Numbered from the stretch's first letter, positions 3,431 through 30,923 are shown. The stretch: DNA of 64,000 nucleotides from Euprymna scolopes (GCA_053919585.1 CM132825.1), one strand, 5' to 3'. The notes: generated by a model not told the origin, from the letters alone. Numbers and translations: made by a program.

Positions 3431-3627
3431 CCTATTTACTATGCCTCCCCACGGGACAGAGTTAGACACCAGAGTCGTTTTTTAACGCGGAGAAAAGGTA
3501 CAAAAATAAAAATTGTCTCAGTCGTGAAGGATTTCTCCTCCACCGAAAGAGAACATGAAATAGAAGTGCAGCATCTGAAGAACAAATACTACACTTTGAT
3601 CTTGTCCCGAAGGCCAAGAACCGTGTG
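3431..3627 (-). mobile_element. U2 snRNA-headed retroposed element (SINEU-like or variant-U2 retrocopy), copy 1, apparently full length
   Basis: The minus strand reads GGTTCTTGGCCTTCGGGACAAGATCAAAGTGTAGTATTTGTTCTT (U2 5' end) followed by a body shared with the copies at 18037 and 24540; flanked by a 15-bp direct repeat tgtatgctctatgta (3416-3430, 3628-3642). Confidence 0.85.
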
Positions 3628-4719
3628 TGTATGCTCTATGTAGGAGGGCATCAACACCTCCCTGCAAGAACTTTAGAGACCTAACATCTCCTGTAATTGA
3701 GGTATACATGCAACCGGGGACAACTTGTGAATTTAATATTCCCTTGACATTTCCACCTTTGGAGAAAATGTTTTCATCTCCTCAGGTGAATACTGCTGCA
3801 GATATATAGTGTACACAGACAGTACTGTTTTGCCGTTTACAGTTCTCATGCCTTATCTATCTTATCTCAAAACGTCACCTTGTGTGATTTTTTTTTTTTT
3901 TTAATTAATAGGGGAAACATAATTTTTCATACAACCAGAACTACAATTAGGATCTCCATTTTTGTTTAAATTGGAAATATTTTCAAAATTTGCAACATTA
4001 CAAAATTCACGTTTCCTTCACCTGACTCTTTTTAAAAAGAATCCTTTAAGGATTTCACTTTCATTTTGATACGACCCTAACTGCGATGAGAATACCCATT
4101 ATTTTTTTGTCCAAATTTAAAAAAAATTTTCAAATTTTCATCTGCTTGCTATGGCCAAATAGTTCCTCTGCTGTGTGGATACCTTGGGAAAGGTAAAAGC
4201 TAAGAGAGTAAACCCTGACAAAAAAATCCGGTTTGAAGTCCCGATAGGTGGATCTTGAAGCATTGCAACACTTTTCTGGCAACTCCTGCAGCTGTTGCAG
4301 CTGTGCTGGCTCCAATTGCATTGGCTTGCCTTTCCGTCTGACTTTGTCTGCAATGTCGAGAAGGAGACTCTAGTAACTGGGCAAACCTAGGTCTTATCAT
4401 CCATACAGGCCTGCATCCAGAGAACCAACTCCAGCTTTGAATTGTATAATCATAGAAGATGTTGCAGTGCACCAGACTAGATGCAGAATGCTGTTGTCTT
4501 ATGAACAAAAGGTTGCTGTCATAAGATAACAAGTCTGCTATTCCTTTTCTTTTTAATGGTCTCCAGGTCATTTCATTTTCTGGATATGGCTGATCTTTGC
4601 TTGTCTTTTTGATGATGATTCTCTTATCGATAATTCTTTCTGTTCTCCCACATTTTCCTTCAAAATCTAATCACTCTTGATTCTGTAATTATTACACCAA
4701 AGAGGGTTGCTAGAATTCT

Positions 4720-5540
4720 TGCTGGTCTTGACCAATCTGAGGTTTTCAGTCCTGATTTGATTCCTGTTGTTGATTTCAAACATTGTGCACCTGAACTTTC
4801 TTCTATATATCCTCTCAAAATTTAATCTCTGTCTCAGTCTTGTTTTCCTTATTGGAAGGAATCCTCTGTTGTCCCTATCTTTAAAACTGCTGATGATTGA
4901 TCTGAGCCAGCTAAATATCGTTCTGTTAGTCTTCTCACTTGTTATTAGCAAAGTCTTTGAAGGGTTGGTCAAGAACAGGCTTGTTCATTTTCTTGAAGTC
5001 TGGGCTTAATGATGTTCGGTATGGCTTTCATGGTTTTTATTCAACAGCTGAGTTATTAACTGTTATAACTAAACAGATCTGTCAGTTTGGATGATTCAGA
5101 CGAGAGGTAGAGTCAATGTGCTTGATATTTCAACAGTGTGGGGCACCCTTCTACACTACATACATATCGAGGTTATGGTATTGGTAAAGTTCTTGATAGT
5201 GTTATGTCTTTTCTTTCTGATTGAAGCTTGAAAGTAAGTAGCTCTTGAGGGAGTATTTTCATTTTCTTTTCCTATCAAATCCAATGTTCCTCAGGGCTCG
5301 ATTCTATGTCCAACACTGTTTCTTCTTTATACGAATGACCTTCCAGAAAATGTTATTCAGAAAATTTACCATTTATGCTGATAACAGCACCCTTTATTAT
5401 GGTATTGCTTCTCACCCATCTTCCTCGGATCAGTTTAAATATGCAGTTGATCTAGAAGTTGATTTGGGCTATATTATGGATTGGAATAAGAAACGGCTTG
5501 TTTTGTTTAATCCTGTTAAGACTCACCTATTGTCCTTCAG
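4720..5540 (+). mobile_element. Degraded CR1-group LINE RT fragment
   Basis: KHCAPEL, WKESSVVPIFK, YRSVSLL..VISKVFE, VPQGSIL, IYADNST remnants. Confidence 0.75.
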
Positions 5541-5675
5541 TATTTTATTTTTATGTCAGGCATTCTTTTCTATTTTCTTTCACACTTTTTCCTTTTCTCT
5601 TTACAAAGTTTTTGTTGCATTTAATTTTATTAACAAATAAAGTACACTATTTATTTATTTATTTTTTTTTTTTAG

Positions 5676-5788
5676 GTACTCAAGGCCAACGCGGATCTGT
5701 GGGTCCTATCGACGATGGGGGTTGGAATACAGTAGCGTCCAAGCAAATACGGATACCATTCGATTCAAATAAATTACGTTTACCTAAG
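5676..5788 (+). CDS. eIF4G: eIF4G internal exon (linker after MIF4G): GTQGQRGSVGPIDDGGWNTVASKQIRIPFDSNKLRLPK
   Basis: poly-T/tag acceptor and AAG|gtaata donor; contains the eIF4G DDGGWNTV motif; phase 1 to 0. Upstream exons are not seen in the window. Confidence 0.9.
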
Positions 5789-5915
5789 GTAATATTTTTA
5801 TTCAAACTTATTATTTTTGATTTTTTATTATTTTTGATTTTTTATTATTTTTGTATTTTTTATATTTAATTAATGACTTCTGGTGTAATCTATCCAAAAC
5901 CTTTTCCTTCTTTAG

Positions 5916-6028
5916 CAACAAAAGATCGATAATGTTCAGCTTGGACCAGGTGGTGGTAATTGGGGACGTGGTAGCAGTGGTGGTGGCCTTAAAGGTTCGC
6001 AAGAATCTGAACGATCTCCTGGAAACCG
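5916..6028 (+). CDS. eIF4G: eIF4G internal exon: QQKIDNVQLGPGGGNWGRGSSGGGLKGSQESERSPGNR
   Basis: tttag acceptor and CG|gtaaaa donor; LGPGG..WGRGSSGG motif typical of metazoan eIF4G; phase 0 to 2. Confidence 0.9.
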
Positions 6029-6684
6029 GTAAAATACTCTTTTCTTTTTTCTTTTTCTTTTTTTTTTTTTTTACTTGGTAAAAATATTTATAAGCATACA
6101 TTTGATCTGTAAAAATCAAGATGCAATGATGTTGAATCTTATGTTTAGAATCCTGTATTCTAATTTTGATCAAAATCTATTACATCATTTTGAAAATATC
6201 TCTAATTTAAGGCTCAAGCTTAAGAGGTCTTAAAAAGAAATAGAAATTCAGGGAATCTTGCTTAATTATGTTAGATAGGTGATGGGCAATGCCAAAAAAT
6301 ATCGGACGTAGATATATACACAATGTACGCACGCAATGGCATAGATCACCAATTACCTAGCGATGACATCATTCCTATCAAGAGTTGCGGTTATGGAAGA
6401 AAATGACTTAAAATGAAAACAATAGGATGCCCTACATTTTAACCTGGATTGAAATTACTAAAAACGCAAAAGAAAAGATTAAATTCCGATTTGTGAAAAG
6501 AAAATAAAAGCCCAACAGGGAGTGAGGCACTCGACAACAATCAAGCAATGAAGACATTTCTGCACCGCGCACCTCGATGCCGACCACTCGTCATTTTACT
6601 GCTGTGTGTCGATTTGTCAATAAAGCTAAGTTGCTAATGTTATTCATGTCATATTGAAATTAACAGCATGTATTTTTTTCGCAC

Positions 6685-7589
6685 GCATTTCAATAAGTAT
6701 CCCGACTTTTTTCGTATGGACACTTTTGTTGGTAGTACACACATGAAACTCTACTCGCCTTCAAAGTAATCTCCTCCGGCTGCAATGCACTTGTTGTACC
6801 GTTCCAACAACTTCTGAAAGGCCCCATGGAAGTCCTCTTGTGTGAGAATGTCAATCACAGCGTCTTTAATCTCCTCAATTGAGAACCTCTAAGGTTTTCC
6901 CTGAGTTTACCAAATAAACAAGACTAAGAGAACAAAGTCTGGATTATAGTGAGGGTGAGTAACTGTCTTGATGTCTATCTTGATCGAATAATGTGATGAA
7001 GATGGAGTTAGTCTTGGGATGAAGTTCACAAATCTTCTGCATCTTCAATTTCTCGGGAATAATTGTGTGTACAGTTCCCACACTGACGTCAAATTGTGCA
7101 CTCATTGTCTCTATAGACACAAGACGGTTCTTATCCATGATATTCTATATTTGACCAATCGACTCTGGTGTTCTGACTTCCTTGCTCCTCCTACATCCCT
7201 CATCATCCCTCACAGACTCCCTACCTTACTTGAATCTCTTATGCCACTCAAAAACTGATGCTCGATTCATGCAAGATTATCCAAAAGCAGTTTGAAGCAT
7301 TCTTCTGTGGCATTTTTTTTCCATGTTTAAAACAAAATTTTATTGTATATCGTTCTTCTAAAGTATCCTCATGTCCAGATTATATTTTTGAAATTCACCA
7401 GCTGTGACTATCAGGCTTTAGTAGGGTGTATTCCAACTCCTGCTCTAGCTGTTCATTTAAACCTGAAATCATATAAATTGGGCAGTCATCTCATACGATG
7501 TATATCAATAACATACTGAATTTTTAAGAATCTCCAATGATTTTAAATGCTTGTACAAAAGAGTCTGGAAACTTATTGAAGGCACCTCG
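6685..7589 (-). mobile_element. Internally deleted mariner (Tc1/mariner) transposon
   Basis: TIRs ttcaataagtatcccgacttttt / agtctggaaacttattgaaggcacctcg|ta; the minus-strand remnant RLVSIETMSAQFDVSVGTVHTII.EKLKMQKIC is a mariner HTH. Confidence 0.85.
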
Positions 7590-7852
7590 TAACAATTAGT
7601 TTCAAATGACTATGAATCAAATTTAATGTAAATTTGAAATATTTTAGTTTTGAAGAGAAAGTTTGTTTGGTTATCATGCACGGCTTTACATTATTTATTT
7701 TTTTTATCATCCAGGGCTCATTACTGAGTGAAAGATGTCTTTTCAACCATTATTATTATTTTAAATAAAACAAGCAAGGTCAAATTATTCAAACAATAAA
7801 GTGTTTAATAAAACCTTATACTGTAGAACTTCGGAATACCATGGCCATAGGA

Positions 7853-7896
<44 letters not shown>

Positions 7897-8670
7897 GTTA
7901 CAATGTGGAATACAATGTTTTTCCAGGTTATGGTATTTGCCCCGCCTTACGGTGTTATTTATAATGTTATTCGATTACATACATGTTTATTATATACTGT
8001 ACTAGCATTTTGTTACTAATTTTTAATGTCATATCCGGGTGTTCTGCTGTATTCTTATTTTTTTTTAAATGAAGACTGTTAAAAAAAAACATCTGATGAA
8101 TTTCAAATATTCATACTTTTTAAGTCTCAACAGAAAATTTGGTGCATATTTACAATTACACTTATTAAAAAGAAAAATCTTTGATGTACGTACTCATCAC
8201 GGAACAAAGATGTCATATTCCAAAAATCATATGAGTTTGGCTAGTAACTTTTCTACTTGGCTAGTAAACAAGAATATTTAGTTACCAAAGATCAACTAAA
8301 GATAAATTTGTCCGTAGAGCCCTGTCGTGGTTATTGATATGTCAACAGAATTGCAAGTAACTTCCTATAAGGAATTCAAATTTTTATCAAATTCCATCTC
8401 AGGGTCAGGTTTTCAAATGGGAGGTTGTGCTCTTTTAAATAAATCAAAGAGACTGAAACTTTGAAATTATTTATTGATGCCTATTAAATTTTCACAAATG
8501 ATTTCCAGGCCCTCTTTACTCCCTTTTGCATAAAACCAAATATTGCCCACATTGCATTGTTTAGCTGAGTTGTGTTCCAAAATTCATAATGATTGGTTAA
8601 TTTGGATTAATAGGACTGCAGTTCTCATCTTGAGTGTTATTTTCACGTTGGTATATATTTCACGTTGGTT

Positions 8671-8711
<41 letters not shown>

Positions 8712-8716
<5 letters not shown>

Positions 8717-9073
8717 AATGGGAATTTGAAAACTTTGAAGCGTCGAATATAATGATAAAATCATGTTTATTTACTGATCTCCCCCCCCCCCCCCATTTAA
8801 TTTTTACTGTGTGTGACCATCTTTTACTTTAAATCCCGCTCGAAACTGGAGCATTGTACACTTTAAATCACCGGAACAACGTAAATTCTTTTCTCTTCGC
8901 CATAACACCAAAATAAAGAAGAAGAAAGAAAAAAAATTTCACAAACCAGACTTTCGACCTTGATGAGGCTATGTATTAGCGAAATATCGGACTTACAAAA
9001 AAAAAAATCAGTAAATAAAAATGATTTTATTATTATATGCAACACTTCAAAGTTTTCAAATTCCCATTTAAAT
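8712..9073. mobile_element. MITE with ~65-bp TIRs inserted in a (TA)n tract
   Basis: atttaaatgggaatttgaaaactttgaag / cttcaaagttttcaaattcccatttaaat. Confidence 0.75.
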
Positions 9074-9365
9074 TATATATATATATATATATATATATAA
9101 TACACCAAATTCCTGACACGTGCTTTACAGATACAGCATTATCAATAGAAAATGAGAGCATACCCCTCTCCCTTCCTGTAAGACCAAGTAAAACTTGGTT
9201 TAATTATGAATGCAGGATGGCTGCAAAAGGAATGCCGAGTGGCTCAAGAAAATCTCAAAAGAAAACCTGTTTCTTATTTAGAATTTGACTTAATTAAAAA
9301 AACAAATACAGAAAAAGATTTATGATTTATGGACTCATTACAAAAATCCAAAAATCATATAGCAG

Positions 9366-9398
<33 letters not shown>

Positions 9399-9399
<1 letters not shown>

Positions 9400-9845
9400 T
9401 AGCCTGAATGCCCAGCGTTGCCCAAATGTTTGGAGGCATGTGTTAAGAGGAAAAAAAAAAAATGGTAGTAGCAAGCGGGCTCTCAAACCCGTACCGCGAA
9501 GTGGGAAAAGAATGTGAAAAGGAAAAAAATGTGATATCTTCGTTGTTGCCCCCATCACCAAACCGGAAATGACAAAGGTTTAAATTAAGGCTAGTCAATT
9601 GAAAAGAGGGATGACTTTCGAAAATATCAGTGGAAAAAAAACGACCCCTCCTTGTAGGGAAGTGCCCACTTAAGGGTGAAGGAATTAATATTTTTATCCA
9701 ATTTTTCGATATTTGTCATCTGAAGGGTGTAGTTTCAAAACTATACTGATATCGTGAAAATCTGTCACCTCTGTCAAAAGTTTTAGGCAGATATACAAGT
9801 ATACATACATACATTTAAACAGGCAGGTGTGATTTATATTATAGA
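9399..9845 (-). mobile_element. Complete non-autonomous Helitron (family A)
   Basis: Minus strand: A|TCTATAATATAAA ... gggcaacgctgggc hairpin ... CTAG|T; no TSD, AT target. Confidence 0.85.
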
Positions 9846-10399
9846 TATATATAAAATCTGGTTTACAAGTTTTAGCAGTAAATTGTATCCATTACAAGGC
9901 TGATTTTAAACTTGGTAGTTTGAATTAAGTTGTCTCTCTCTTATTCATAAATAATGGTGGATCAAGAAATGTCTTCCTTCGTACTTAAAATTTTCTTTGT
10001 TAAAAAAAAGTAAAGTACTTGATCAATTTATATGATTTTTGGAATATGACATCTTCATTCCATGCTGGGTTTGTACACCATAAGTTTTTTTCATTAAATT
10101 GTAAATAAGAATCGAAAACCTTTGATAACTGTAATGTCCTACATCTGCCGACATTTATAAAGGTTAAAAGAAAAACATGGCATACCTAAAGATCAAAAAT
10201 TAATTTCAGTACAAAAACGGAACATGGTAAAGAAAAGGGGAGAGGACAGGGGTCAATACACTGCTAAAATATCTAGAACATAAAAATACAAAGCCACCAG
10301 AAAGAAATAGTAAACCTACAAGGAACTTTTGAAAAAAATAAAATAACTCTTAAAAATAAAATAAAATAAAAAGTAATGAATCAAAGAAAAAATAACACA

Positions 10400-10880
10400 T
10401 TAATTTCTAAACAAAAATTCCCCAAATCACTCCTTCATAACAAATGAACCGAAAGATTCTGTAGTGAAAACCTGTAACAAATCCATTGTCTCAAATGAAA
10501 GATACTACGAATTCCTGCGGACTCTTTCCTTCTTTCCTTATAAAATCGTATGTCTATCTTGTCCATCTATGACAATATATTATGGACAACAGGCAGCATT
10601 CGTAAATTATGAGAACAGAATATTATAATCATCATAGTTAAAATCTAAAACTTCTTTTCAGACCTAATAAGTTACAATCCAATTGCACTTAAAAGTTGTC
10701 TGCAAAATCATTGAAAGAATAGTGAATGGCGGATTGACATTTGATACATGGATAAAAAAGAAACTAATTACAAAACTACGATCTGGGTACAAAAAAAAAT
10801 CATGTATAATTGATAAGTCAGTAACTTTTATCTAAAATGCTTTCATTAAAGAAGGACAACACCTAATCACTATATTATTA
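10400..10880 (+). mobile_element. Highly degraded I/Ingi-group LINE RT fragment
   Basis: SYNPIALKSC..KIIERIVN..L resembles YRPISLTSCLCKLMERMVN.RL. Confidence 0.5.
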
Positions 10881-11104
10881 TTTGATATAGGGGAGGGAGG
10901 AGCATGTCAGCAGGAATGATTAGAAACTTAAATAAACCTTTGAAGTGAATCAATAAAATAAATAATATATGAATAATGCTACAGTTGCCACTTTAATTTT
11001 GAAGCCATAATTCGGGTTCATTTAAGCAAAATAATATAATCTCAGAATAAAAGACTTCCCCTTGCGGATGCAGTATAAACAAATTGGTGAAGTGCTAGTT
11101 CTAA

Positions 11105-11530
11105 TTGCGGCCTTAAAAGGTATCCAGTGATGAGAGAGACCCCCCCCCCTCCATTTGGGGTTGTGAAGAATGTAGAGTTGCCCTTAGTTACCATTGCTCC
11201 CAGGTATCACTTTTTACCGATTTGGTAATACCTGTTAGAGCATTTGGTGTTATCAGATCAGGTTGTCTACAGATACTGGCTTGCCAAACAAAAAATCCAC
11301 CAAACATTGATGTCATTTTTTTTTTTTTTTTTTACCCTTTGTAAAACTTAAATCATTTCTACAAAGTCAAAAACAAATCAATTTTCTTTCATAAAACAAA
11401 CCAAACTCTGTGAATAAATATTTGGAAATATAAAAAAACTTGAATCAAACTTTTTTCAAATATTACTGTATTCTGCACTATATAACCCAAAGAGGTTGAT
11501 GTGTCATAAAACAAAATAATTAAACCAAAC
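11105..11530 (+). mobile_element. Degraded SINE/MITE-like interspersed repeat (tail also at ~57175-57235, inverted)
   Basis: ccattgctcccagg..tggtaatacctgttag block and aaccca.agaggttgat.tg.cataaaac tail. Confidence 0.4.
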
Positions 11531-12194
11531 TAAAGTATTGTGCTACACACAGAGCCATCTGTTGGTCACCTAATAAACTAGTTTAGTAACAAGTTTCCTC
11601 ACTGTTTGTACCTGTATTTATGTTGAAAAAAAAGAGAAATGAATGCTAAAATAAATTTATTCTGATTTACATTTGAAGACAAAAAAAGGCAATTATCACT
11701 ATATTTTCAGTGATTCATGTACTTCAAAGGAAAGTTGAATTGTGCCATGGGAAAATATTAAAGTGGATTTTTTTTTTATTTTATTTTTTTATTAAAATTA
11801 TCAGTTTCGAGTTTATACATGTTGTAAACTGTTTTTAAATAAAAAAGCAATTTAAGTTTATAAAAGGCAGAACAATGCGAAGGTGTGACGCATGGACTCA
11901 AACTGGTGCAACTTAAGATATAGTGGTGAAACCAACTGTGCAGTTTCACTTTTATTGATCCAATTCATGTATGTCTGTATAGCCAGACATGTATAAGTGT
12001 TTTCCTTTATTTTTTTCTTCATCACAAGGTATATTGCCACTCAAGCATATTGCTCTGGAAGGGAAGTATTAGAGACTGAAAACAAGCATGTGGATCTCTA
12101 AATGGGAGTCGAGTTTAAGTAGGAAGAAATGAGTCCTCTGTGTGACACCTCCTAGATGTAACAATCTTACTTCATCTTTAGATGTATTTTATTT

Positions 12195-12422
12195 TTGGTC
12201 CCCCTACTATTTGTTTGTTCGCACTTTTCTCAATAACCATGCCTTGGATTTTTTTTTAATTTTGCACAAACATTAGTCATGGTAAAAGAAAATTTTTTGC
12301 CAGAGCGGATTTTGTGGGATAACTCTGGTTGCCCTCCTCCCCCTGGTGGGGGGGCATTATAGGGATAAAATTGTGCCCAAATCGTTCACTCATGAAGGAG
12401 GACCCTGCATGCTCGGCTTGTT
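12195..12422. mobile_element. Short HINE-like element (reverse complement of the 62122-62624 family)
   Basis: tttttggtcccc..gcactttttctcaataacca..ccctgcatgctcggcttgtt. Confidence 0.6.
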
Positions 12423-12877
12423 ATGTAAGTAAAGGAGCAGTAGAATGATCCAACCCTTCCATCAGTAACAGATCTGAGGTGAATGTCAGTTTTAGGTGGT
12501 TATCAAAACAGGATGCTTTTTGCAAGAGAAAGAGCATTCATTTCAAATTGTGGTGAAACAAGATTGTTTTCTCATTGCACCACAGTGCTCCAGATTTAAA
12601 GAAAATCGGTAAGATCTTAATCAACAATGCTCTTTGAAGTGTTGCCATATATGTGTCATCTGCATAAAAATATGAGCAAATTATCATTGTGAGTTAAAAG
12701 ATCAGGAAGACTATTGGGTCCAGAGTAGATCCGTAAAACATTGCTCCTAACAACCTCTGTATGTTATCTTTTTTGTTTTTTCTTTTTTTCATGGGTGCAG
12801 GGAGAAAGAAAAAAAAAAAAAAATGAAAGTTGAAGCCTCACCAATCTTAAAGTAATAGCATAATTCTTTTCCAACAG

Positions 12878-13066
12878 ATTCTCTGCATTAAGTGGACCAG
12901 CCGAAGAAGGTCGTGGACGTTATGGGCGAGGTGGTGTTAGTCCTGCTCGTGGAGATGTTATGACAAGACCATATTCATTTTCCTCAACTAACAACAGTAC
13001 AAGAGGAAAAATAATGTCGCGCTCATCACAAGAAGGAGACAAAGAAAGAATGATTGGACATTCAAG
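12878..13066 (+). CDS. eIF4G: eIF4G internal exon: (R)FSALSGPAEEGRGRYGRGGVSPARGDVMTRPYSFSSTNNSTRGKIMSRSSQEGDKERMIGHSR
   Basis: ccaacag acceptor and AG|gtatgg donor; splicing to the previous exon rebuilds the conserved NRFSAL motif; phase 2 to 2. Confidence 0.9.
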
Positions 13067-13080
13067 GTATGGCTTTTGAT

Positions 13081-13147
<67 letters not shown>

Positions 13148-13316
13148 AATTTTGATTCTTGATCAGGATTCCCCCCTATTAAAAATCTACACACACACAC
13201 ACACACACACAAATTTTGATTCTTGATCAGGATTCCCCCCTATTAAAAATCTGTATGATGAACTAAAAAAAAAAAAAAAAAAAAATCATCTAAACTGATC
13301 AGGTATTTTTATTAAA

Positions 13317-13782
13317 AGTAGCAAATTTGCCTGGCGTTGACCAGTATTGCATGTAACGTTTCATTTAAAAAAAAAAAAAAATGCAGTAAAAGCAAACTGA
13401 GACATGTGCATGCGAGTATTGCATTTTTTTTCCTAAACAGTTCACTTATTGTAAGTTAAAAAAAAAAAATTAAAAAATACACTCACGCTGAGATTGAAAC
13501 TAAAACCTAAAGAAAGGGAGTTAAGTACAATAACCATTCAGCCAGCTTGCCACGACTTTAAAAAGGGTTTTTAAATCAACATATTCTTAACATAAGGAAG
13601 CTGTCATTTGAACAATTCGCTCAAACACAGTTGTGAAACAGTTGACAAACAGATAAAAATCCAATTACATCCCCACCCCCAATGTGTCTGAATATCATAT
13701 ATACCAAATCCGTAGATCAAAAATTTGTGGAGTGTATAGGTTGAGAGTCGTCCTCCCTCCCTCCCTTTTATAAATATATAGA
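13317..13782 (-). mobile_element. Non-autonomous Helitron related to 25201-25680
   Basis: Shared aacagttcac.t.ttgtaagt, ttcttaacataag and gtagatcaaaaatttgt blocks; ends tttataaatatataga. Confidence 0.6.
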
Positions 13783-13874
13783 TAACTTTTATGAATATCA
13801 AAAAAAAAATCACAGGGTGAGGGTCAATTTGTTGTTACTACACATTCGCTCGCATTAAGCATTTAAAAATGACT

Positions 13875-14902
13875 TTTTGGTCCCCCGATTTATCGAGGAG
13901 AGACCTATGTTTTCAATGTCGTCCGTTAGTCCAGATGATTGTCAGATAACTGTCCATTAGTTTTTCCTGAAATTTTGCTACAAATTGTATTTCATTAAAT
14001 AGATGTGCACGGTAAAGTTACGGTACGCCCCCCCCCCCCTCCAAGGGGCCCAAAAGAGGTCAAAATGGCCAAGAATGACATGTTTTGCCCCATAAGTTTT
14101 GATCCATCCATTAGATTTTTTTTAAACTTGGCTAAAATGTGGAGCTCATTCTTAATATAAATCCAGTATTGGTTACCCTGGTAAAATTCTGGTTTGCGTC
14201 CCGGGTACTTTCAGTCCTAAAAACGCCCCTTTTTATGGCTCTTTTTTCATATTTCTCAACAAAAACTTGATATGTCAAACTATATAGTGGTTTTTCACGG
14301 GGATCAACTGAAATATACATGTTTTAAGGCCTTAAATTGCACAGTTATCCATTTACACTGGGATTCGGTGTCCCCAGGTGCACAAAAGAGGTTAAAAATG
14401 ACATTTTGCCCCATGGCGTTTGATTCATCCATTAGATTTTCCTAAAACTTGGCCAAAATGTGGAGGCCATTGTTCTTAATATAAATTCAGTATGGGTGAC
14501 CATGGCAAAATTCTGGTTCACATCCTTCTAAGACTTTTAGGATTAAAAAAACATGCCTTTATGGAGTTCTTTTTTCATATTACTCAAAAACTTGATATGT
14601 ATGTCTAGTGGTTTTCCATGGCGCTGAATTCAAATATATGTCTTAAGGTGTGAATGCACCATTTGTCCATTTTTACTGGGATTCTGCATTCCCAGGAGCT
14701 CAAAAGGAGTCACAAATGCCGCAAAATTGAAAAAAAAAAAAAGACACTTTTTACCCTATAATTTTTGCCCCATCCTTTAGATTTTTTTGAAAATTGGCAA
14801 AAAATGTGAAGCAACGTTGGCCCTTCTCACTTTTCATATTCATTATTTTTTCACTATTTTTTTGTGGCGTCATCTCACATGCAGCACCAGAGAGTGGCTT
14901 GT
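13875..14902. mobile_element. Helentron/HINE-like element with internal ~300-bp tandem repeats
   Basis: tttttggtcccc start and cttgttt end in T-rich flanks; repeated catccattagattt..aaacttgg.caaaatgtggag units. Confidence 0.55.
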
Positions 14903-15038
14903 TTATTTTTATTTTATTTTAAATATTGGAGAATTTTGGACAAGAACCCAAATTTTTTATTTCCAACATATCTTTTCTTTTTTCTCATTTTTTACTATTT
15001 TAACAAAAAAAAAAAATCTTTTTCCAATTAAATCTTAG

Positions 15039-15237
15039 GAATATGCACAGCAGTAGTGGTAGAGCTACTCCTCCTTCAAGAGGGCCTAGTAGAGAAAGCA
15101 GCCGGTCTCGAGATGTACGACACAAAGAAGAAGCAGCAGAGCAACCAACTCCACCTGTTAAAGAACTCTCAATAGACGAAATAAACCATAAAACAGTAGC
15201 TATTATGGATGAATACTTACATATAACGGACATTAAG
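15039..15237 (+). CDS. eIF4G: eIF4G internal exon, start of MA3 domain (..ELSIDEINHKTVAIMDEYLHITDIK)
   Basis: cttag acceptor and AAG|gtgagt donor; AIMDEYLH matches the MA3 N-terminus; phase 2 to 0. Confidence 0.93.
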
Positions 15238-15418
15238 GTGAGTTTCTTCATGCTTATTTTTAATCTTCCTAAAACGCTTTTTTGTTTGTTTTTTTTTTGT
15301 TCTGTTATAGAAATTGCTACAAACAAGTTTCAATGAGGATTAAATTTTTCAAGGAATCTAATGACTCCATTTAAATTTTCATTCAAATCCATCTATTATC
15401 GATTAAATCTATAAAATA

Positions 15419-15472
<54 letters not shown>

Positions 15473-16020
15473 TATTGTAAAAGTTTAAATTTTTTTCCAT
15501 AACATATTGTATTCTTGTAAGTCACCAATAGAGAAAAGTTATAAACTTTTATACTTTTCATATTCATTTTTTCGTAATCAAGACATTAAAAAATAAAAAT
15601 ATTGCCCAAAAAAGAAAAAAAGAAAGTTATATTGTATGTATCCGTTTTGGACAAGATCTCCAAAAAAGATTTCACTTAATTTGATCGAGTAGTTTTGTTT
15701 TTGTTACAGCGGAAAAACACGTTTTTATGACAGCGCATTGAAGTCAGCCATCTTTGAATTGTTTTAACATGCCAGAGGGATATAACTCGGTTTAAAGCAC
15801 CGACACTCCCTCCCCATCTTTAATAACTAGCTTTTCTTCCTAAAAATCGAACCTTTTGCTCAGTATTGTAACAAACTGCTTTGTTTTTTTTTTTTTAGAA
15901 CTTCATTCCATAACTTATACATATAAGTCTTTTTTTTTTTTTTTTTTTTTCTCTATTTTCATTTTTTAATGTCTTCATTAAACTGTACAAGTACCCATTT
16001 TATTTTTTTTATATATATAG

Positions 16021-16546
16021 TCTATAAATATAAAAGCAAAAATGTATGTATGTGTGTTCGCTTTTTCTGTATGTCTACAAAAGGCTTTTTTCAGAGAAGC
16101 GGTCGGTCGGTTCACAACTTTTTAAAACTTTTTATATCACATATAAATCGCAATATCTCCCAGTTAACAACGAAGCTCGCCTGTCTATTTAATTTGCTCG
16201 ATTTCGGGAAGATAAATATTCAACATTTGTCGCTCTCCGCATGTGGGTTAGTCTTTTTCCTATTAACATCTTGGGGAAAATAAATCCCGCAGTCAAACTT
16301 GAACTCATTAAAATGGGCATCTGCCAAATCCAAGTAATTAAATAAATTCAAACGTGTTTCCGTTAGCATCTCGCAGTGGGGCAATCGTTAACGTCACTTT
16401 TTTTTTTTTTTTTTTTTTTTTTACACTTTAATTTACAACTTTGCCTCAAGGGTTCGGGTTCGATCCTCATACTTACTTTTCCTTTTTTTATTTATTCATT
16501 TTTTTCTCTCCCAAACACTCGGGCAACGTCGGATACCCCTCGCTAG
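16021..16546 (+). mobile_element. Non-autonomous Helitron (family B)
   Basis: 5' TCTATAAATATAAAAGC; 3' cgggcaacgtcgg hairpin and CTAG. Confidence 0.8.
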
Positions 16547-17105
16547 TCTATATATATATATAAAAGCGAAAATGTATGTATGTTTGCTTTTTGTGTATGT
16601 CCGAGAAAGGCTTTTTTCAGATCAGTCGACTCACTTAAAACTTTATATATCATGTCTAAATAATAATATCTACCAATTAACAATGGGGGTCGCCTGTCTA
16701 TTTAATTTGCCCGACTTTCAAAAGATAAATATTCGACATATTCGGATCGCGGCATGTTGCTTTCACTTTTCAGTATAAAAACAGCGAAACTGGATTCGAA
16801 CCGGATGTAAACGTCACTGTCAACTTTGGCCTCATTAAAAATTGTGATGTTTGACAATCACTTTTTAATTGCTCTTACATTGACTGTCGCTGTAGCGCAG
16901 TTGTCCAGGCTTAGCCTATGGGCCTCAAGGCTCCGGGTTCGAGCCGACCTGTCATCAGGCCTCCTCCTTTATTTTCATTTTTTTTTTTTTTATATATATA
17001 TTTAAATAGGGTTAAGTTTCCTTTTTGTTCCCCCCCCCCCCCACACACACACACAAATGCACAAACCTACAAGCACCCGGGCAATGCCGGATCTGCCTTC
17101 AACGC
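16547..17105 (+). mobile_element. Non-autonomous Helitron (family B), directly abutting the previous copy
   Basis: 5' TCTATATATA..AAAGCG; 3' ccgggcaatgccgg hairpin. Confidence 0.75.
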
Positions 17106-18036
17106 GCTCTCATAAAAACGTGTTTTTCCGCTGTAAAAAAAAAAACTACTCAATCAAATTAAGTGAAAATTTTTTTCAGAGATCTTCATGTCAAAATGGA
17201 TACATACAATATAACTTCTTTTTTTTTTTCCGATATTTTCATTTTTTAATGCCTTGATTAAATTGTACAAATGCCTTAATTTCATTTTTTTTTAAATCAC
17301 CTCCTTGAAGAATGCACTTAAAAAGGTTTAAACATTTAAAGAGTTACTTTTATTGGTGTTCTTTAAGATTTAAATATTTATTTGATTCATTAAATTTGCT
17401 TGCCATAAACTAAACTAGTTTTTTTTATTTATTTACATTTTCAGTGTCCCACATTCCATATACTTATGTGTTATATAATCCGTATAATTATTTCTTATAC
17501 AATTATTGCATTAATTGTAATTATACAATTATTATACATTCTATGCAATTTTAAGTGTTTTGCAATTTAAAATGTAAAAATTGAATTTATTTAGTAATTA
17601 AAAAAAAAAAAAACTTAAATTTATTTTAAACGAGGGTTGTGGGGCAGCCTTGCTAGGTTGTAAAATATTTTTTAATATATTTTAACTCAAGCAGATTTAT
17701 TTATTGCCAAGCCAATTCTCTATTGAATATTATATTGTACCTAATATGTAGTATTGATTTCAACAGTTACAAAAAAAAATTTTTAAATGACTTGGGTATC
17801 ATCAACTAGAAACAGAACCCAAATATTTAGCACTCCAGCCATGTTCCCTACTGTTTGAGCTATTAACAGATAGATAAGAAAGATTTAAAATTGAATCACT
17901 TCAAGCTATGAATGAATTCGCACATGCATAAAACTAATAGAAATATATTGACCAGTTGAAACAAACATTTTACATTTCAACTCGCTGACATACTTCTGTA
18001 TGCATAATTCATCCATCCAAACAAGTATTTTACTCA

Positions 18037-18222
18037 CTTAGCTTTTTGGTCAAGATCAAAGTGTAGTATTTGTTCTTCAGATGCTGCGCTTCCATTTCTT
18101 CTCTTTCGGTGGAGGATCAGTCCTTTACGACTGAGACAATTTTTTATTTTTGTACCTTTTCTCCACGTTAAAAAACGACCCTGGTGTCTAACTCTGTCCC
18201 GTGGGGAAGCATAGTAAATAGG
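18037..18222 (+). mobile_element. U2 snRNA-headed retroposed element, copy 2
   Basis: cttagctttttggtcaagatcaaagtgtagtatttgttcttcag head; body and 3' end (..gcatagtaaatagg) colinear with copies 1 and 3. Confidence 0.85.
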
Positions 18223-19132
18223 AACTCATTATAAACTCTCCTTGGTGTATGATTACTATCACTATCCTGTTAATTTCTGTGTTATCGGACCAGTGGTTTT
18301 AGAGTTTATCAGTTAAATATTTACACACATATACTGTTCTATTTATATACACTAAATCTTTATCTCGAGAAGTTTTTAATTATTGTTTTTTTAATTATTC
18401 GATTTCTTATTAAAAATACTAACTTTTTTAGGCAAATATTTTTTACAAATTATGACACTTTAAATTATTCCAACCAGTACAGGGTTCGCACAGACTTGAA
18501 AAATCCTTATTTCCTGAAAATAGAATTCTTTGTCCAGTGAAACTTTGTGAAAATACTAAATACTATAAAATTATTTTTAAGTATTAAAAAAGAATACCAT
18601 TAAAATATTTTTTAAATATTGAAAATAAAATGGAAAGGCATTGATCTGAAATTGTATAGTAATAGTGTGGATACAAAAGTTATCTCCCTTTTTCACAAAA
18701 CTACCTTGGTTAGTAACTTTAATTGGCTATTTATTTGTTGTATATTTGATTTTTTTTTTTTTTACCACTTTTTCGAATCACTATGGATTGTAAAACTCCA
18801 AATTTTGTTTTGAAAACTTGAATTTTATCTGGAGGAGGCCTTGAAAATCGACATTGGAAATCTGTACAAATCCGTGTGTTTGTGTTTATCTGCCCTTCTT
18901 TCTCTCTCTCTTCCCTGCCTCTCGCTACTTTAAAATACAGTCGAACCTTAGGGTATGTTTTTTAGTTTACGATGTGGAATACAATGTTTTTCCGGCCCCT
19001 GGTTACATTATTTGCTCCACCTTATGATGTTATTTGGTTATATACTATACTGCATTTTGTTACTAATTTTTAATGTCTGTCTAATATATATAAACAAACA
19101 TATAGTGGAGACTGTTCTTTTTCTCTTTTCAG

Positions 19133-19305
19133 GAAGCTACACAATGTGTAATAGAAATCAAGAATCAGCCTTATCTATACTGCTTTGTATCTAAAGCTTT
19201 GGAATATGTGCTGGAACGTTCTCAAGTCTCACGAAGACAAACGGGATTATTGCTTCATAATTTAGTTAAAGCGGAGATTATTGATGTTGAAACTTATTTA
19301 AAAGG
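19133..19305 (+). CDS. eIF4G: eIF4G MA3 exon: EATQCVIEIKNQPYLYCFVSKALEYVLERSQVSRRQTGLLLHNLVKAEIIDVETYLKG
   Basis: pyrimidine tract/cag acceptor and GG|gtaagc donor; EAxQCV..LERS..R..G.LLH MA3 signature. Confidence 0.95.
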
Positions 19306-19426
19306 GTAAGCCATTTCCCATTTATTTAGAGCTTGCCGATTTCTTTTTCCATTTTCAGATTAATTAAAATATATTCTTCTAATCTCTTTATTTTTTATTT
19401 ATTTAAAAAAAAATTTTTTTTTATAG

Positions 19427-19631
19427 ACTGAACGAAATTCTTGAGTTTGCTGATGATATGGCAATTGATATCCCAATGATATGGACGTATCTCGGAGAGT
19501 TATTAGGAGTGATGGTTAACGATAAATGTGTTCCATTGGGTTTCCTCAAAGAAGCCTGTAAACCTTTGAAAAGAACAGACAAAGCAAAAATATTAGTTGC
19601 TGAAATATTGCACAATGCTAGCCACCAATTG
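19427..19631 (+). CDS. eIF4G: eIF4G MA3 exon: LNEILEFADDMAIDIPMIWTYLGELLGVMVNDKCVPLGFLKEACKPLKRTDKAKILVAEILHNASHQL
   Basis: tatag acceptor and TTG|gtaagt donor; ADDMAIDIP.IW.YLGEL motif. Confidence 0.95.
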
Positions 19632-20547
19632 GTAAGTTGGATACAGATATGTGAACATGGTGTTGGGTTGCAGAATTTTTTGTTAAAAATTTACATCTGT
19701 CAGTTTTTGTTTGGATTCTTTGTCAGCTGATATTTGTTCTTTGTGATGAATTCCCTAGAAAAGTCACTTCCGATTAATGTTTACAAGAGTATAAAATATT
19801 CTGTTCTTTAAAAAAAAAAATTTTTTTTTTAAAACAGCCAAGTTCGTTTGAATGTTTTAAACATTGATTAGAAGTGACTTTTCCCAGGTTATTAATTGAA
19901 CTTGGTTTCAACAGAATTTATAACGTTAAAGATTTAAATGTTAGCTAGAAGCAAAGTACAATATGCTATTTCCTAAGAGTAATGTAAATGCAAAATGGAC
20001 CATCGTCTACTGACTTCATCACTTTTTTTTTTACTTTCTAGAAAACTTCTCTTTTCTTTCTTTTTTAGATTAGATTGTCCAATATATTCGCCTGAATTCA
20101 GCGTTTAGTACTCATTAATTCCTTTCATTTTGGTAGCAATTGCTTAGTGGCCCTGATGTAAAAGTTTAGCAAATAGAGCAAAAGGTGACTTTGTGATTGG
20201 GTTTGAATCTCATGAACGGCAGGTAGTCAACCCTTGCTGATGATTTTATGTGTGTGTTGGGACGATTAATCGGAAAATTTGTACATATTTCCCAATACCG
20301 AAAACGATTTTTTTTTTTTTTTTTTTTCCCTCCCTCCCTCTCTCTCTCTCTCTCTCTGTCTTTTACATTGTAAAGATTTTTCTTTATTTTCATTCTTTAA
20401 TGTAGAGGAATTCCAGACAAAAAAACAAATCTTACTAGTTTAGCTAATTTGTGGACATTTTTATGTATTAATCTGAAATAACGATTAAAGTTTTATTAAA
20501 GGCTAGCATACCCACATATTTTATAAATTTATATTTTCTTAATTCAG

Positions 20548-20646
20548 GGTCATAGGAAAGTCAGTGAATTATGGAGGTCATCAGGCTTGAAATGGTCAGA
20601 TTTTATAATTGAGCCTGAAGATGAAGCAGAGTTCATTAAAGAAAAG
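20548..20646 (+). CDS. eIF4G: eIF4G exon: GHRKVSELWRSSGLKWSDFIIEPEDEAEFIKEK
   Basis: ttcag acceptor and AAG|gtaact donor; LWR.SGL.W.DF motif; 99 nt, phase 0 to 0. Confidence 0.95.
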
Positions 20647-20765
20647 GTAACTTTTATGATTATAATTTCTGTTAATTGATTACGTTAAGTATTGCTTCCT
20701 CAGCATTCTTTCAACGCCTTGAGTGTTTCAACATTCTTCTGACCTCATTTCTTTTCTCTCTTCAG

Positions 20766-20895
20766 AAACTAGAATTTACTCTCAGTGTTGATGCGCCACA
20801 ACCAAATCCAGAGACAATTTCCATCGAAAAATTAAAAGAGAAGCTCAATAATTTACTGCTGACGCCAGAGGCCAAAAATGAAGAGATTTTTGATT
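20766..20895 (+). CDS. eIF4G: eIF4G exon (start of W2 region), 3' end lost in assembly gap: KLEFTLSVDAPQPNPETISIEKLKEKLNNLLLTPEAKNEEIFD[W..]
   Basis: ttcag acceptor; in frame with the previous exon; NEEIFD runs into the N-gap at 20896. Confidence 0.88.
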
Positions 20896-21135
20896 NNNNN
20901 NNNNNNNNNNNNNNNNNNNNNNNNNNNNNNNNNNNNNNNNNNNNNNNNNNNNNNNNNNNNNNNNNNNNNNNNNNNNNNNNNNNNNNNNNNNNNNNNNNNN
21001 NNNNNNNNNNNNNNNNNNNNNNNNNNNNNNNNNNNNNNNNNNNNNNNNNNNNNNNNNNNNNNNNNNNNNNNNNNNNNNNNNNNNNNNNNNNNNNNTAAAT
21101 CCGGCACAATTTAATGTTTTGTTTCGTTGTTTCAG

Positions 21136-21217
21136 GCAAATGTACCCGAAGAAATGACTAAGCAATCCCCATTTGTCAGAACTTTGATGACAGCAGTATG
21201 CTTAAGTGCCATCTCAG
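21136..21217 (+). CDS. eIF4G: eIF4G W2 exon: ANVPEEMTKQSPFVRTLMTAVCLSAIS
   Basis: tttcag acceptor and CAG|gtcaga donor; FVR.LMTAVC.SAI motif. Confidence 0.93.
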
Positions 21218-21279
21218 GTCAGAGCAGTTTTCATTTCATTTCTTTGTGATTAATGTGTGTGTGTGTATGTGTATATATA

Positions 21280-21657
21280 TATATATATAAGGCAAAATGT
21301 GTGTGTGTGTATGCTCGCTTTTTCTGTATGTCCGCAAAAGGCTTTTTTCCGGTGGTTCTTGGGGGGGGGGGGCTCATTCTTAAAACTTTTTATGACATCT
21401 AAATGATAATATCTAGGCGTTAACAACGGGGGTCGCCTGTCTATTTAATTTGCCCAACTTTGAAGTGCTAAATATTCCAGATTTTTGGATTGCCACATGT
21501 TGCTTTTGCTTTTCAGTATTTAAAAAAAAAAAAAAAAGCAAAACTCGATTTGAATATCCCAGAAAGTGATGTAAACGTTTGGTCAATGTCGGCTTTTCAC
21601 CGTCATATCAGACAGTTACTTTCATTTGGAAACACTCCCCTAATAAACGAGGAAGCT

Positions 21658-21697
<40 letters not shown>

Positions 21698-21785
21698 GGG
21701 TTATTACTTCGCTTATTCTTTTGTTTTGATCCCCCCCCCTCCCAACACACACACACACACACACACCTCTAAACACCCCCACTAG
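21280..21785 (+). mobile_element. Non-autonomous Helitron (family B)
   Basis: Shares cgcctgtctatttaatttgcc..aacaacgggggt blocks with the 16-17 kb copies; ends CTAG|T. Confidence 0.75.
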
Positions 21786-22289
21786 TTTATAATAAATTTA
21801 TTTTCTCAAACATCAGAAATATAATCATTCAAAATAAATGTAAGAAATCGTTACGCTTCAGAATTCGATTCTCATTTTGGCCAACGTAATTTCCAAGCAA
21901 GTCTAATAATAGTAAAATTAGTGAATATTTGTTCCATTCTGGAACCTGAGCAAAAATGTACACTTAAACCAGTAAGAGATTACCTTGGCTAAAATGTGAT
22001 TTTTTTTTTTTCTTTCTTTCTTCTTCCCTCGACATAGAATATCAGATCAACAAACTCTTCCTGGTGCTTCTAGATGAGTTAGTGTTTACAGATTTTAAAA
22101 TGTATTGCCTGTGAAATAACCATAAGAAAATGATACAAAGACGAAGGGGAAAATCTAACAAATTTATACATACAATTTAACCATTGATTATTGAGCCAAT
22201 GAATGTGAAATGATTATAAATCTCTTGTTGGGTGTGTTTTGTCCTCAAGGTGTCTTGGAAATCGCTCCTTTGTCAGCTCTTACTGCCAG

Positions 22290-22742
22290 TTTATAGTCAA
22301 CTGCTATTGTCTACAAGCTCTTGCTACTACTGACAATTTATACAGTCAACTGCTATTGTTTATAAGCTCTTGTTATTATTACTAACAATTTATACAGTCA
22401 ACTACTATTGTTTATAAGATCTTTTTATTACTAACAATTTATACAGTCAACTACTATTGTTTATAAGATCTTTTTATTACTAACAATTTATACAGTCAAC
22501 TACTATTGTTTATAAGATCTTTTTATTACTAACAATTTATACAGTCAACTACTATTGTTTATAAGATCTTTTTATTACTAACAATTTATACAGTCAACTG
22601 CTATTGTCTACAAGCTCTTGTTATTACTAACAATTTAGTCAACTGCTATTGTCTACAACCTCTTACTACTACTGACAGTTTATACAGTCAACTGCTATTG
22701 TTTATAAGATTTTGCTATGAGTGCCAATTTATACAGTCAACT
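22290..22742. repeat. 49-bp minisatellite (~9 units) in an eIF4G intron
   Basis: Unit tttatacagtcaactactattgtttataagatctttttattactaacaa; core units identical. Confidence 0.95.
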
Positions 22743-23565
22743 AAAGGTAGTGCTGCTACAAATAATTTTGCTCTCGTTATTTCCTAATCCTATTCTCAAT
22801 TCAGTGACTGATCACTTGATATGTCATAGATGCGGATTACCTCAAAATTTTTGTAAAAGATGTAAGATTAATTGACTTTGCCATTCACTCTAGATGTAAC
22901 TTTCTTGGCCTGGAACAAACTGCTCAAAAGGAAATTCCAGTGTTTCGGCCATGTGTGGCACCAGCCTGGTGAAGAGTTCATTTGTAAACTAGGGGCACCC
23001 AACAAATCCATCGGTTGGCAAAAATTCAGTCGGGCCAAATATAGAAGTTTTATCCGGTCCTAGAGTTTTTAGTGTCCAACGCTGGAATTGCGAATGGCTA
23101 AATCATGTCGATCAATGTGCGATGCAGCTAACACTACTGGATCCAGCTCAAATTCACTCGAGGTGAACGACACTACAACTATATTTAAAATAAAAAAAAA
23201 AAAGTGGGGATGGTTAATAAAGCATTTGAGACTGTATCAATTGGCAAATTAGTTGTCACTAATATGGATTTTAAGTCGGTTAGGCATGGTATGATTTCTT
23301 GTGGCAATTGAAGAAGGATGTATAGTATAAATGTTGTATTTTTGCAAAAAAAAAAAAAAAGGGGTGAATGTAGAAATTAGCTAGAATCGTATAAGTTAGC
23401 ATTGGTCACCTTTTTGTGACTGTGCGTCAAATTTATAGAATAAAGAAATTTATTTTTTTGTTAAAAATAAATATTGACCTACAATGTTGTTGTTGTTTTT
23501 TCTTTTTTTTGTTTTTTTTTACTTTTGATTTATTAATTCAATTAGCAATGTTAATGTATTTGCAG

Positions 23566-23709
23566 GTCTGGAGTCAACCGCCAAAGTAGAAGAACAGTTA
23601 ATTAAAGAAAGATCTAAATTACTACAAAAGTATTTAATCAATCAAACTCTACAGCTACAAGCTTTGTATGCTTTACAAGCCTTAGATCACCAAATGGAAC
23701 ATCCCCAAA
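23566..23709 (+). CDS. eIF4G: eIF4G W2 exon: GLESTAKVEEQLIKERSKLLQKYLINQTLQLQALYALQALDHQMEHPQ
   Basis: ttgcag acceptor and A|gtaaga donor; LLQKYL...LQALYALQAL...EHP motif. Confidence 0.95.
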
Positions 23710-24539
23710 GTAAGATCTTTTTTTCCTCTTTCCTTTTCTTTTTCATGCACTTTCTCTTCCTCCCCTTTCCTTTTATTTCTTTTTTTTTTTTTCTTTTTTT
23801 TTATTATTTTAGGTTTTATTTTCTTCACTTTATTTTTTATTTCATATTTTTTATTTATTTTTCATTTTATTTATTTTTCATTTTATTTTTACTATTCTTC
23901 CCTAAAACAAAAAACACCTGCGTTCTTAAACCTACGTAAATTTACAAAATTTATTCAGGACTTTAAGCTAAAAATCTGTTTTACACAAGAATATTTTATC
24001 TGAAAAAAATAAACCGGATTTTGTCCAAAATGTTCTTGTGCAGAACAAATTTTTACACTAATACGTTGAAACCTATTCAATTTCCAAAGCTTCCTGCCAT
24101 CGGTTTTATAAATTTTTCCTGGACATTCGACAGCATTCACTGGCCATCAGTGTGGAACATCGTTTTGCACAAGTATGGCCTGCCCAAAAAAAAGTCATCA
24201 TTGCAGTGAAGCAAATTTATACACATTTCAAGTGTCGCATACAAACAAGATTCTTTCAATGACTGGTTTGCGGTAATTGCTGGAATCGGTCAAGAATGTT
24301 TTTTATTTTTTCTTGATTGGATATTAAAAACAGTAATTAACAATTTGGTTGTTTAGAAAATATTTTACGAGTAAATGTTTGATATATAATAGTTGATATT
24401 TTTAGCGAAAACATTTATTGTTCTTTATGGGAGTGTATTTATTTCAGTGTGAGGAAATGTATCGTTAACATATCCTGAAATATTATTAGGTATTTGAGTA
24501 TGTCTTGAATCTGCAAGTGTGTATATTCCTGATATTGTA

Positions 24540-24721
24540 CCTATTTACAATGCCTCCCCACGGGACAGAGTTAGACACCAGGGTCGTTTTTTAACATGGA
24601 GAAAAGGTACAAAAATAAAAATCGTCTCAGTCGTGAAGGATTTCTCCCCCACTGAAAGAGAACGAGAAATGGAAGCGCCGTGTCTGAAGAACAAATACTA
24701 CACTTTGATCTTGGCCAAAAG
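24540..24721 (-). mobile_element. U2 snRNA-headed retroposed element, copy 3 (slightly 5'-truncated)
   Basis: The minus strand reads cttttggccaagatcaaagtgtagtatttgttcttcag..., with the same body and 3' end; possible ttgta TSD. Confidence 0.85.

Positions 24722-30870: not shown

Positions 30871-30923
<53 letters not shown>

Follow-up and report, generated by a model that had tools for sequence, protein, structure and literature searches.

A very abundant, probably SINEU-type family of U2 snRNA-headed repeats in Euprymna scolopes

Three repeats headed by the 5' end of U2 small nuclear RNA (snRNA) lie in a 64,000-nucleotide stretch of Euprymna scolopes DNA (GCA_053919585.1 CM132825.1), hereafter the window. 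They very probably represent a single, very abundant family of non-coding, non-autonomous retroposons of about 190 nt, of the SINEU type and in a mollusc host, and the three copies are read as dead passengers and not as snRNA genes. The initial annotation of this DNA had offered two readings, an invertebrate U2-headed short interspersed nuclear element (SINE) or retrocopies of a divergent U2-variant snRNA. The first agrees with one head/body junction, a target-site duplication (TSD) at copy 1, a huge copy number and occurrence under several species labels. The second fares badly, given a body without U2 match, scores of 24-32 bits, unrelated upstream flanks and no discrete RNA ends. Copies number more than three and the body is unlike U2, contrary to two outcomes that the initial annotation had set against its own proposal. 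The copies are as follows.

3428-3620, minus strand: copy 1, unit of 193 nt (nhmmer E 1e-68).
3621-3627, minus strand: extra 5' letters of copy 1, CACACGG, 7 nt.
18037-18225, plus strand: copy 2, 189 nt, 5' end short by 2 nt (nhmmer E 3e-65).
24537-24722, minus strand: copy 3, 186 nt (nhmmer E 4e-67).
24729-24722, minus strand: 5' letters of copy 3, about eight, diverged, extra or untemplated.

All three copies are present where they had been placed, colinear and about 90-92% alike, with pairwise alignment identities of 91.7, 90.1 and 89.7%. The 26-nt U2 box AAGATCAAAGTGTAGTATTTGTTCTT has three exact matches in the window, with 0 expected, and a fourth at 55776 with C for T. Searching the window with a hidden Markov model (HMM) derived from these copies brings up no additional full copy (nhmmer). 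The limits of the family are given by about 26,000 foreign contigs, in which loose ends with random flanks fall at 3427 and at 3620/3621; the unit is therefore bounded by 3428 and 3620/3621 and ends in ...AAATAGGTAC, 3 nt past the ends first proposed. It starts with (G)TTCTTAGCC, equivalent to U2 nt ~5/6, and its tail has the letters ...GTCCCGTGGGGAGGCATAGTAAATAGGTAC. The 5' ends differ between copies, by truncation or by extra letters.

The head of every copy corresponds to U2 nt ~6-47 (about 43 letters), comprising stem I and the GUAGUA branch-point box, and all copies depart from U2 at one same letter, directly after GTTCTT. A reference set of true U2 genes was obtained by a metagenome scan with the head pattern, which returned more than 120 contigs with such genes, 97 of them usable. 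The stem IIa letters ATCAGCTTAATATCTGAT follow GTTCTT in 80 of these 97 genes and are absent from the units, and the GCTTGC loop of stem-loop III, carried by true U2 genes, is not found in the units either. Stem IIa/IIb, the GCUUGC loop and stem-loop IV are all missing. The earlier description of a U2 5' end including GUAGUA, a common divergence point and no stem IIa is thus borne out by both the alignment and the true-U2 comparison, and the C(UUCG)G noted in stem I of copy 1 is indeed present. An extra A in GATCAAAGTG was considered as a mark of the element and rejected, since it occurs in the more than 120 true-U2 contigs of many eukaryotes, none of which has the unit body.

Searched at the gathering score across the whole window, the Rfam U2 model (RF00004) reports nothing at the three copies. 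Under relaxed settings the whole units reach 32.2, 31.6 and 24.2 bits, short of the gathering score of 46, and the body alone (18078-18235) has no match at E<=10; the Infernal check proposed in the initial annotation therefore leaves the units below threshold and the body without a U2 counterpart. A derivation of the body from the U2 Sm site and stem-loop III, hinted at by the whole-unit alignment, was rejected for the missing body match and the absent GCTTGC loop.

These results bear on the proposal that a divergent U2-variant snRNA active in splicing has the units as its genes or retrocopies and the three copies as its pseudogenes. The layout of the unit is snRNA-like: stem I and GUAGUA stand at the 5' end, AUUUUUG lies unpaired between stems, and the 3' domain is closed. 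The Rfam U2 model aligns AUUUUUG to the Sm site and the following stem to stem-loop III. However, the 24-32 bits come from the head, the stems named above are missing, and the family begins at U2 nt ~6. Furthermore, the upstream flanks of the copies are unrelated: judged by conservation only, neither a proximal sequence element (PSE) nor a 3' box is suggested, because the flanks share nothing up- or downstream. A variant snRNA origin is accordingly held to be highly improbable.

Apart from three derived letters, the unit head agrees with true U2 genes (97 loci). The stem I letters CTTAGCC..GGCCAAG are common to the heads of this family (family A) and of a second U2-headed family in the window (family B, 55753-55890) and occur in 0 of the 97 true U2 genes. 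Because both families have these letters and none of the 97 true genes does, the sequences point to a single captured U2 copy as the source of both heads, followed by module shuffling. Template switching to snRNAs occurs, as in U6-L1 chimeras, and such switching has been proposed for the first addition of SINEU heads (PMC4494074). The copies might on this basis be independent chimeric retrocopies, each made by a reverse transcriptase jump to U2 snRNA, and not members of a self-propagating family. This is scarcely credible: independent jumps would vary the junctions, whereas one junction and the same derived stem I letters are found in all copies and in the bulk of about 26,000 contigs, and the head begins with nt ~6 instead of nt 1. 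Independent chimeras are refuted for the family as a whole; a jump could still explain a single founding event.

Marks of retroposition are clearest at copy 1, where the following features were located together with those of the other two insertion sites.

3416-3430, minus strand: downstream TSD of copy 1, TACATAGAGCATACA, 15 bp, perfect; its first three letters (TAC) are shared with the unit 3' end.
3628-3642, minus strand: upstream TSD of copy 1, 15 bp.
18032-18036 and 18224-18228, plus strand: candidate duplication ACTCA of copy 2, 5 bp, two letters of it within the unit end.
24734-24730 and 24540-24536, minus strand: candidate duplication GTACA of copy 3, four letters of it within the unit end.
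3314-3430, plus strand: 5S ribosomal RNA (rRNA)-like head (Rfam 5S, 34 bits), with a body to ~3790.
57670-57547, minus strand: second 5S-headed copy (69 bits), with a body to ~57480.

The target of copy 1 is the 3' end of the 5S-rRNA-like repeat, which runs in the opposite direction, and paralogous copies of this 5S-headed SINE skip the insert, with joints 3402>3632 and 3414>3633. The targets of copies 2 and 3 are plain intron sites. That the candidate duplications of copies 2 and 3 overlap the terminal (G)TAC may be due to base pairing between the 3' end of the RNA and the nicked target, or to chance. Two other classes of short element were rejected from the sequence, namely a miniature inverted-repeat transposable element, as terminal inverted repeats are absent, and a hammerhead element or retrozyme, as there is no CUGANGA core. 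As a separate observation, the two 5S-headed SINE-like copies have similar bodies and reach contig depths of 26,000-73,000 under two species labels.

The abundance of the family was assessed by comparing four sequencing runs with positions 2800-4200 of the window. Each DNA run of organisms A and B yields about 26,000 matching contigs, and summed word depth amounts to 0.8-4.3 million over 3411-3645 versus 3.7-47 in non-repeated bins. The copy number is at least in the tens of thousands, far above three, which agrees with the high genomic copy number suggested at the outset. Words of copy 2 are present at 56-69% in runs of four species labels (A-D), as well as in mollusc and invertebrate metagenome RNA runs; a 1.1-kb stretch around this copy is shared only up to the unit's share, its flanks not being shared. 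Mosaic subfamilies are revealed by loose ends with a consensus of their own, which fall at 3500/3502, right after AUUUUUG, and at 3539/3543; such subfamilies have one module alone in common, either the 5' or the 3'. Contigs in the tens of thousands, together with this mosaic structure, argue further against a variant snRNA. Some contigs carry head-to-tail joints, linking 3604-3620 to 3426-3428 with 0-33 letters between; their depth of 19-116 is near single-copy, and they may represent chance insertion, a template jump or a real preference.

Transcripts containing the unit appear in a polyA RNA-seq run, where 14,123 of 12 million records carry it (about 0.1% of sampled reads). Both strands are equally represented (3331 versus 3330 in the peak bin), 86% of the unit reads continue into unlike flanks, and these polyA RNA reads show no pile-up of molecule starts or ends on the unit. 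The polyA RNA signal is therefore best read as passenger transcription of copies embedded in many host transcripts and not a discrete small RNA, and the lack of preferred ends again speaks against a U2 variant. U2 genes have external promoters only (PMC4494074), and each unit contains TTTTT twice, in ATTTTTATTTTTG. The units accordingly fall outside the strict definition of a SINE, which has an internal RNA polymerase III promoter and a unit that can be read through. An excess of A>G changes of the ADAR type was rejected, as the RNA reads show symmetric changes, with A>G at 20, T>C at 21, C>T at 22 and G>A at 20. At 3588/3589 of copy 1, 712 of 5373 polyA reads have a 5-nt insertion (ATCAG, element strand) inside GUAG^UAU, which was not seen in contigs; these reads represent a transcribed subfamily whose branch-point box is split.

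The unit RNA was folded copy by copy (z -3.6, -2.6 and -0.5) and as a consensus of the three copies, which gives the following elements.

3565-3597, minus strand: hairpin 1 of copy 1, a 14-bp stem formed by the branch-point box AAGUGUAGUAUUUG and the first non-U2 letters CAGAUGCUGCACUU, with the loop UUCUU.
18058-18090, plus strand: hairpin 1 of copy 2, the same feature.
3501-3507, minus strand: Sm-like AUUUUUG of copy 1, in an unpaired A/U stretch that separates hairpin 2 from the 3' domain; it is flanked by U and not by purines.
3428-3500, minus strand: 3' domain of copy 1, in which GUACCU and the terminal AGGUAC close the stem UUCUCCGCG/CGUGGGGAG.

Copy 3 forms hairpin 1 with two mismatches. 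This hairpin includes G-U pairs and therefore forms in the sense strand only, and its locking of the branch-point box in a 14-bp stem is hard to reconcile with a splicing U2 variant. Hairpin 2 of the consensus fold is GUGGAGGA-GAAA-UCCUUCAC. The ATTTCTC..GAGAAAT hairpin described for copy 3, the Sm-type ATTTTTG (in all three copies) and the lack of poly(A) in the three copies were all found again. The proposed pairing of the terminal AGGTAC holds for copies 1 and 3, where GUACCU/AGGUAC is intact, and stands in copy 2 with one mismatch. Pairing of the branch-point box with the first non-U2 letters recurs, in other letters, in every module seen; the subfamily at loose ends 3543, for example, carries ACTACACTT, the exact complement of AAGTGTAGT. 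This recurrence could result from selection on the RNA or from a snap-back origin of the junction.

A more specific idea is that the unit RNA mimics the Sm class, with its U2 5' end, a stem that hides the box, AUUUUUG and a closed 3' domain, and that it relies on snRNA-type master loci and the small nuclear ribonucleoprotein pathway. Export, Sm-core assembly and re-import would then return the RNA to the nucleus for reverse transcription, and the hairpin would be kept by selection since the RNA thereby avoids engaging branch points. This idea is considered improbable.

Sequences related to the unit lie in a stack of elements at 50-56 kb, where short U2-containing pieces adjoin a long interspersed nuclear element (LINE). 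The features of this region, and of a second LINE, are listed below.

~50050-55330, plus strand: degenerate, 5'-truncated LINE with APE at 51491-51862 and RT at 52934-53646 (Pfam); ends approximate.
55549-55754, plus strand: piece colinear with the unit and distantly related to it, beginning at U2 nt ~29 and reaching the tail ...GCAAATAAATAC.
55755-55890, plus strand: family B, the fourth U2 head, U2 nt ~3-49 and then a different body, 3' end provisional (HMM positions 1-87, E 1e-9); U2 nt 1-49 when counted from 55753.
40417-41980, plus strand, and 59597-57940, minus strand: two copies of the second LINE in opposite directions, 89-95% alike, RT 77 bits, with a poly(A) end.

The piece at 55549-55754 directly abuts the family B head. 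It resembles the unit in global alignment (z ~4; 0 of 1500 random windows), in its tail (z ~3.3) and by nhmmer (E 0.009), and both it and family B repeat the box pairing: a hairpin at 55551-55585 joins UGUAGUAUCUG and CAGAUACUGCA, and in family B GUGUAGUA pairs with UACUACAC. Set against the 3' untranslated regions (UTRs) of related LINEs, the LINE proper seems to stop near 55.33 kb, which makes 55549-55754 more probably a decayed sister unit of the stack than the tail of the LINE itself. A point on the LINE-tail side is that the tail-like motif is repeated at 55478-55499.

Several observations concern the same region. Between 55300 and 55548 (plus strand), the motif at 55478-55499 reads GGCCATGTGCCTAAG (compare 55713-55731), and this interval may be another decayed short unit of the stack. 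Family B scores 52.4 bits against the Rfam U2 gathering score of 46, though it has no Sm site and no stem-loop III or IV, and degenerate CATTCAAG-like repeats follow it up to ~56000.

The APE/RT LINE that adjoins the unit-like piece at 55.5 kb is the best candidate for the type of partner that moves the family. Its nearest RT relatives, at 78% amino-acid identity and with APE, RT and zf-RVT, come from marine metagenomes; a search for the partner through these protein relatives was of no help, as these relatives have different 3' ends and lack U2 letters. For the window LINE, the protein atlas and the cluster names yielded just RVT_1, with no clade name. The second LINE was considered to end directly at the 5S element at 57670, which was rejected because its poly(A) end lies about 265 nt earlier (two-copy alignment).

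Two further sets of LINEs were noticed in the metagenomes. A 26-kb contig (L125:1-16444) has three LINEs that belong to the group of the window LINE (62% amino-acid identity to its RT piece). They share one orientation, are spaced at about 7.6 kb and form a head-to-tail stack without U2 letters. A young marine LINE family, with nine cluster members at >=90% identity and an 1145-aa open reading frame 2, always ends in ...AATCACAATCATT right before a T run (L121:4125-4160 and the 3' ends of L123 and L124), which suggests that it inserts into T/A runs.

An alternative is that a U2-homing, Keno-like Tx1 LINE moves the unit as its non-autonomous partner, with the head as a carried landing site; every insertion would then provide a fresh target, and further elements would pile up head to tail. 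The joints of 3604-3620 to 3426-3428 fit such piling, as does the order of LINE, 55549-55754 and family B head in the window, and crocodilian Tx1 families have U1/U2 heads in common with SINEU (PMC4494074). On the other hand, 0 of the 3 copies is inserted in U2 sequence, and the 5' side of the window LINE, like its relatives, has no U2 letters. Keno and Utopia have downstream U2 sequence from nt 39 (PMC4640811), whereas the junctions here fall at nt ~1-17 and ~29. In addition, joints of depth 19-116 could arise by chance or template jumping among ~10^5 copies. This explanation is possible but rather unlikely.

For the preferred reading, a SINEU-type retroposon, the following course of events can be proposed. 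The first ~43 letters of the unit would have been copied once from U2 snRNA, and the predicted fold of its RNA has two hairpins on the 5' side, an unpaired AUUUUUG and a 3' domain that is closed. Spread would depend on the endonuclease and reverse transcriptase of a LINE, acting by target-primed reverse transcription, which would give variable TSDs, short 5' truncations or extra letters, and a microhomology of 1-4 nt between (G)TAC and the target. Since U2 lacks an internal promoter and the unit has two T5 runs, the template RNA would most likely come from read-through or host RNA polymerase II transcripts, or from a few master loci.

Several points weigh against this reading. The candidate duplications at copies 2 and 3 span no more than 4-5 bp, mostly overlap the unit end and could be due to chance. 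A LINE with the unit's 3' tail was not found among the window LINE and its relatives; the marine-metagenome relatives have no U2 letters and end in other tails followed by T runs. The likeness of 55549-55754 to the unit is weak (nhmmer E 0.009), and this piece is perhaps a decayed short element and not a LINE 3' UTR. Contig depths are sums and give no true copy number. PolyA libraries are blind to non-polyadenylated small RNA, which leaves room for a discrete transcript. Finally, the fold has 0 compensatory pairs among 54, a count with no power at n=3, and its one-sided changes, seven preserving pairs and three breaking them, prove nothing.

The surrounding gene was identified from open frames with similarity to eIF4G domains.

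19407-19727, plus strand: open frame with the MA3 end, weak match.
27498-27710, plus strand: open frame with W2, 47 bits.

Frames at 15004-15333 and 20527-20676 are eIF4G-like by eye. With plus-strand MA3 and W2 exons around them, copies 2 (sense) and 3 (antisense) therefore lie within introns of an eIF4G-type gene. The initial annotation had placed all three copies in eIF4G introns; this holds for copies 2 and 3 and is not demonstrated for copy 1, as no exon upstream of it was found in the window. Runs of N at 20896-21095, 28465-28601 and 29510-29645 touch none of the copies, and the gap 20896-21095 between copies 2 and 3 affects only their spacing and the intron assignment of copy 3. Elsewhere in the window, sub-threshold Rfam matches to mir-297, mir-1277 and mir-466 at 13080-13150, 30857-30933 and 36916-36977 are TA/TG microsatellites, not microRNA genes.

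The significance of the family lies in its host and its abundance. Published snRNA-headed SINEs come from crocodilians alone; in these hosts they are old, and their transcription is an open question. The mollusc family is a second, independent and extremely abundant case, found in several species and in transcripts, and so offers far more copies and live material for studying master loci, the partner LINE and the reason why the branch-point box is always paired. Family B has a practical consequence: as it passes the Rfam U2 threshold, automatic annotation will over-count U2 genes in these genomes. No report of U2-headed elements in molluscs or cephalopods was found in the full-text literature, Repbase and Dfam lying outside the search.

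Among known small-RNA-related sequences, U2 snRNA itself (RF00004) and its retropseudogenes share nt ~6-47 with the units, including stem I and GUAGUA, as well as an Sm-like AUUUUUG. The units differ from them in having no stem IIa/IIb, III or IV, a score below gathering, derived stem I letters, and a body and tail of their own. SINE3 and other 5S-headed SINEs resemble the units as short, LINE-dependent retroposons with a small-RNA head, but the 5S head has an internal RNA polymerase III promoter and the U2 head has none. Keno (Tx1 clade) and Utopia (NeSL clade) are U2-gene-specific LINEs, according to the passages of PMC4640811 that treat them and Kojima and Fujiwara 2004 as cited there. They too tie U2 sequence to non-LTR retrotransposition, with tandem insertions in U2 arrays on the Keno/Utopia side; unlike these autonomous, single-site elements, the units are non-coding, 190 nt long, located outside U2 genes and carry a U2 part that extends to nt 47.

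Crocodilian SINEU copy numbers are low, and by contig depth the present family is far more abundant. In the SINEU elements of crocodilians the heads are of U1/U2 origin, T runs occur internally and no promoter is known; Tx1 LINEs are their presumed means of mobilisation (PMC4494074). Like SINEU-1/-2/-3 (Kojima 2015, PMC4494074), the units are short and non-coding, with a U1/U2-type head, a junction fixed per family, no poly(A), internal T runs, no recognisable promoter, and mosaic subfamilies formed by exchange of heads or modules. A Tx1-type LINE, the suspected partner of SINEU, is at most a candidate for the units, whose one link to a LINE is the weak colinear relative beside the APE/RT LINE of the window. 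The units differ in their body, which is unrelated to SINEU bodies as described, in first non-U2 letters that always pair with the branch-point box, and in showing no Mariner target preference in three copies. The host is also different, a mollusc, which implies an origin independent of crocodilian SINEU. With this family the SINEU kind very probably gains a member in a new phylum, as distinct from a variant snRNA gene.

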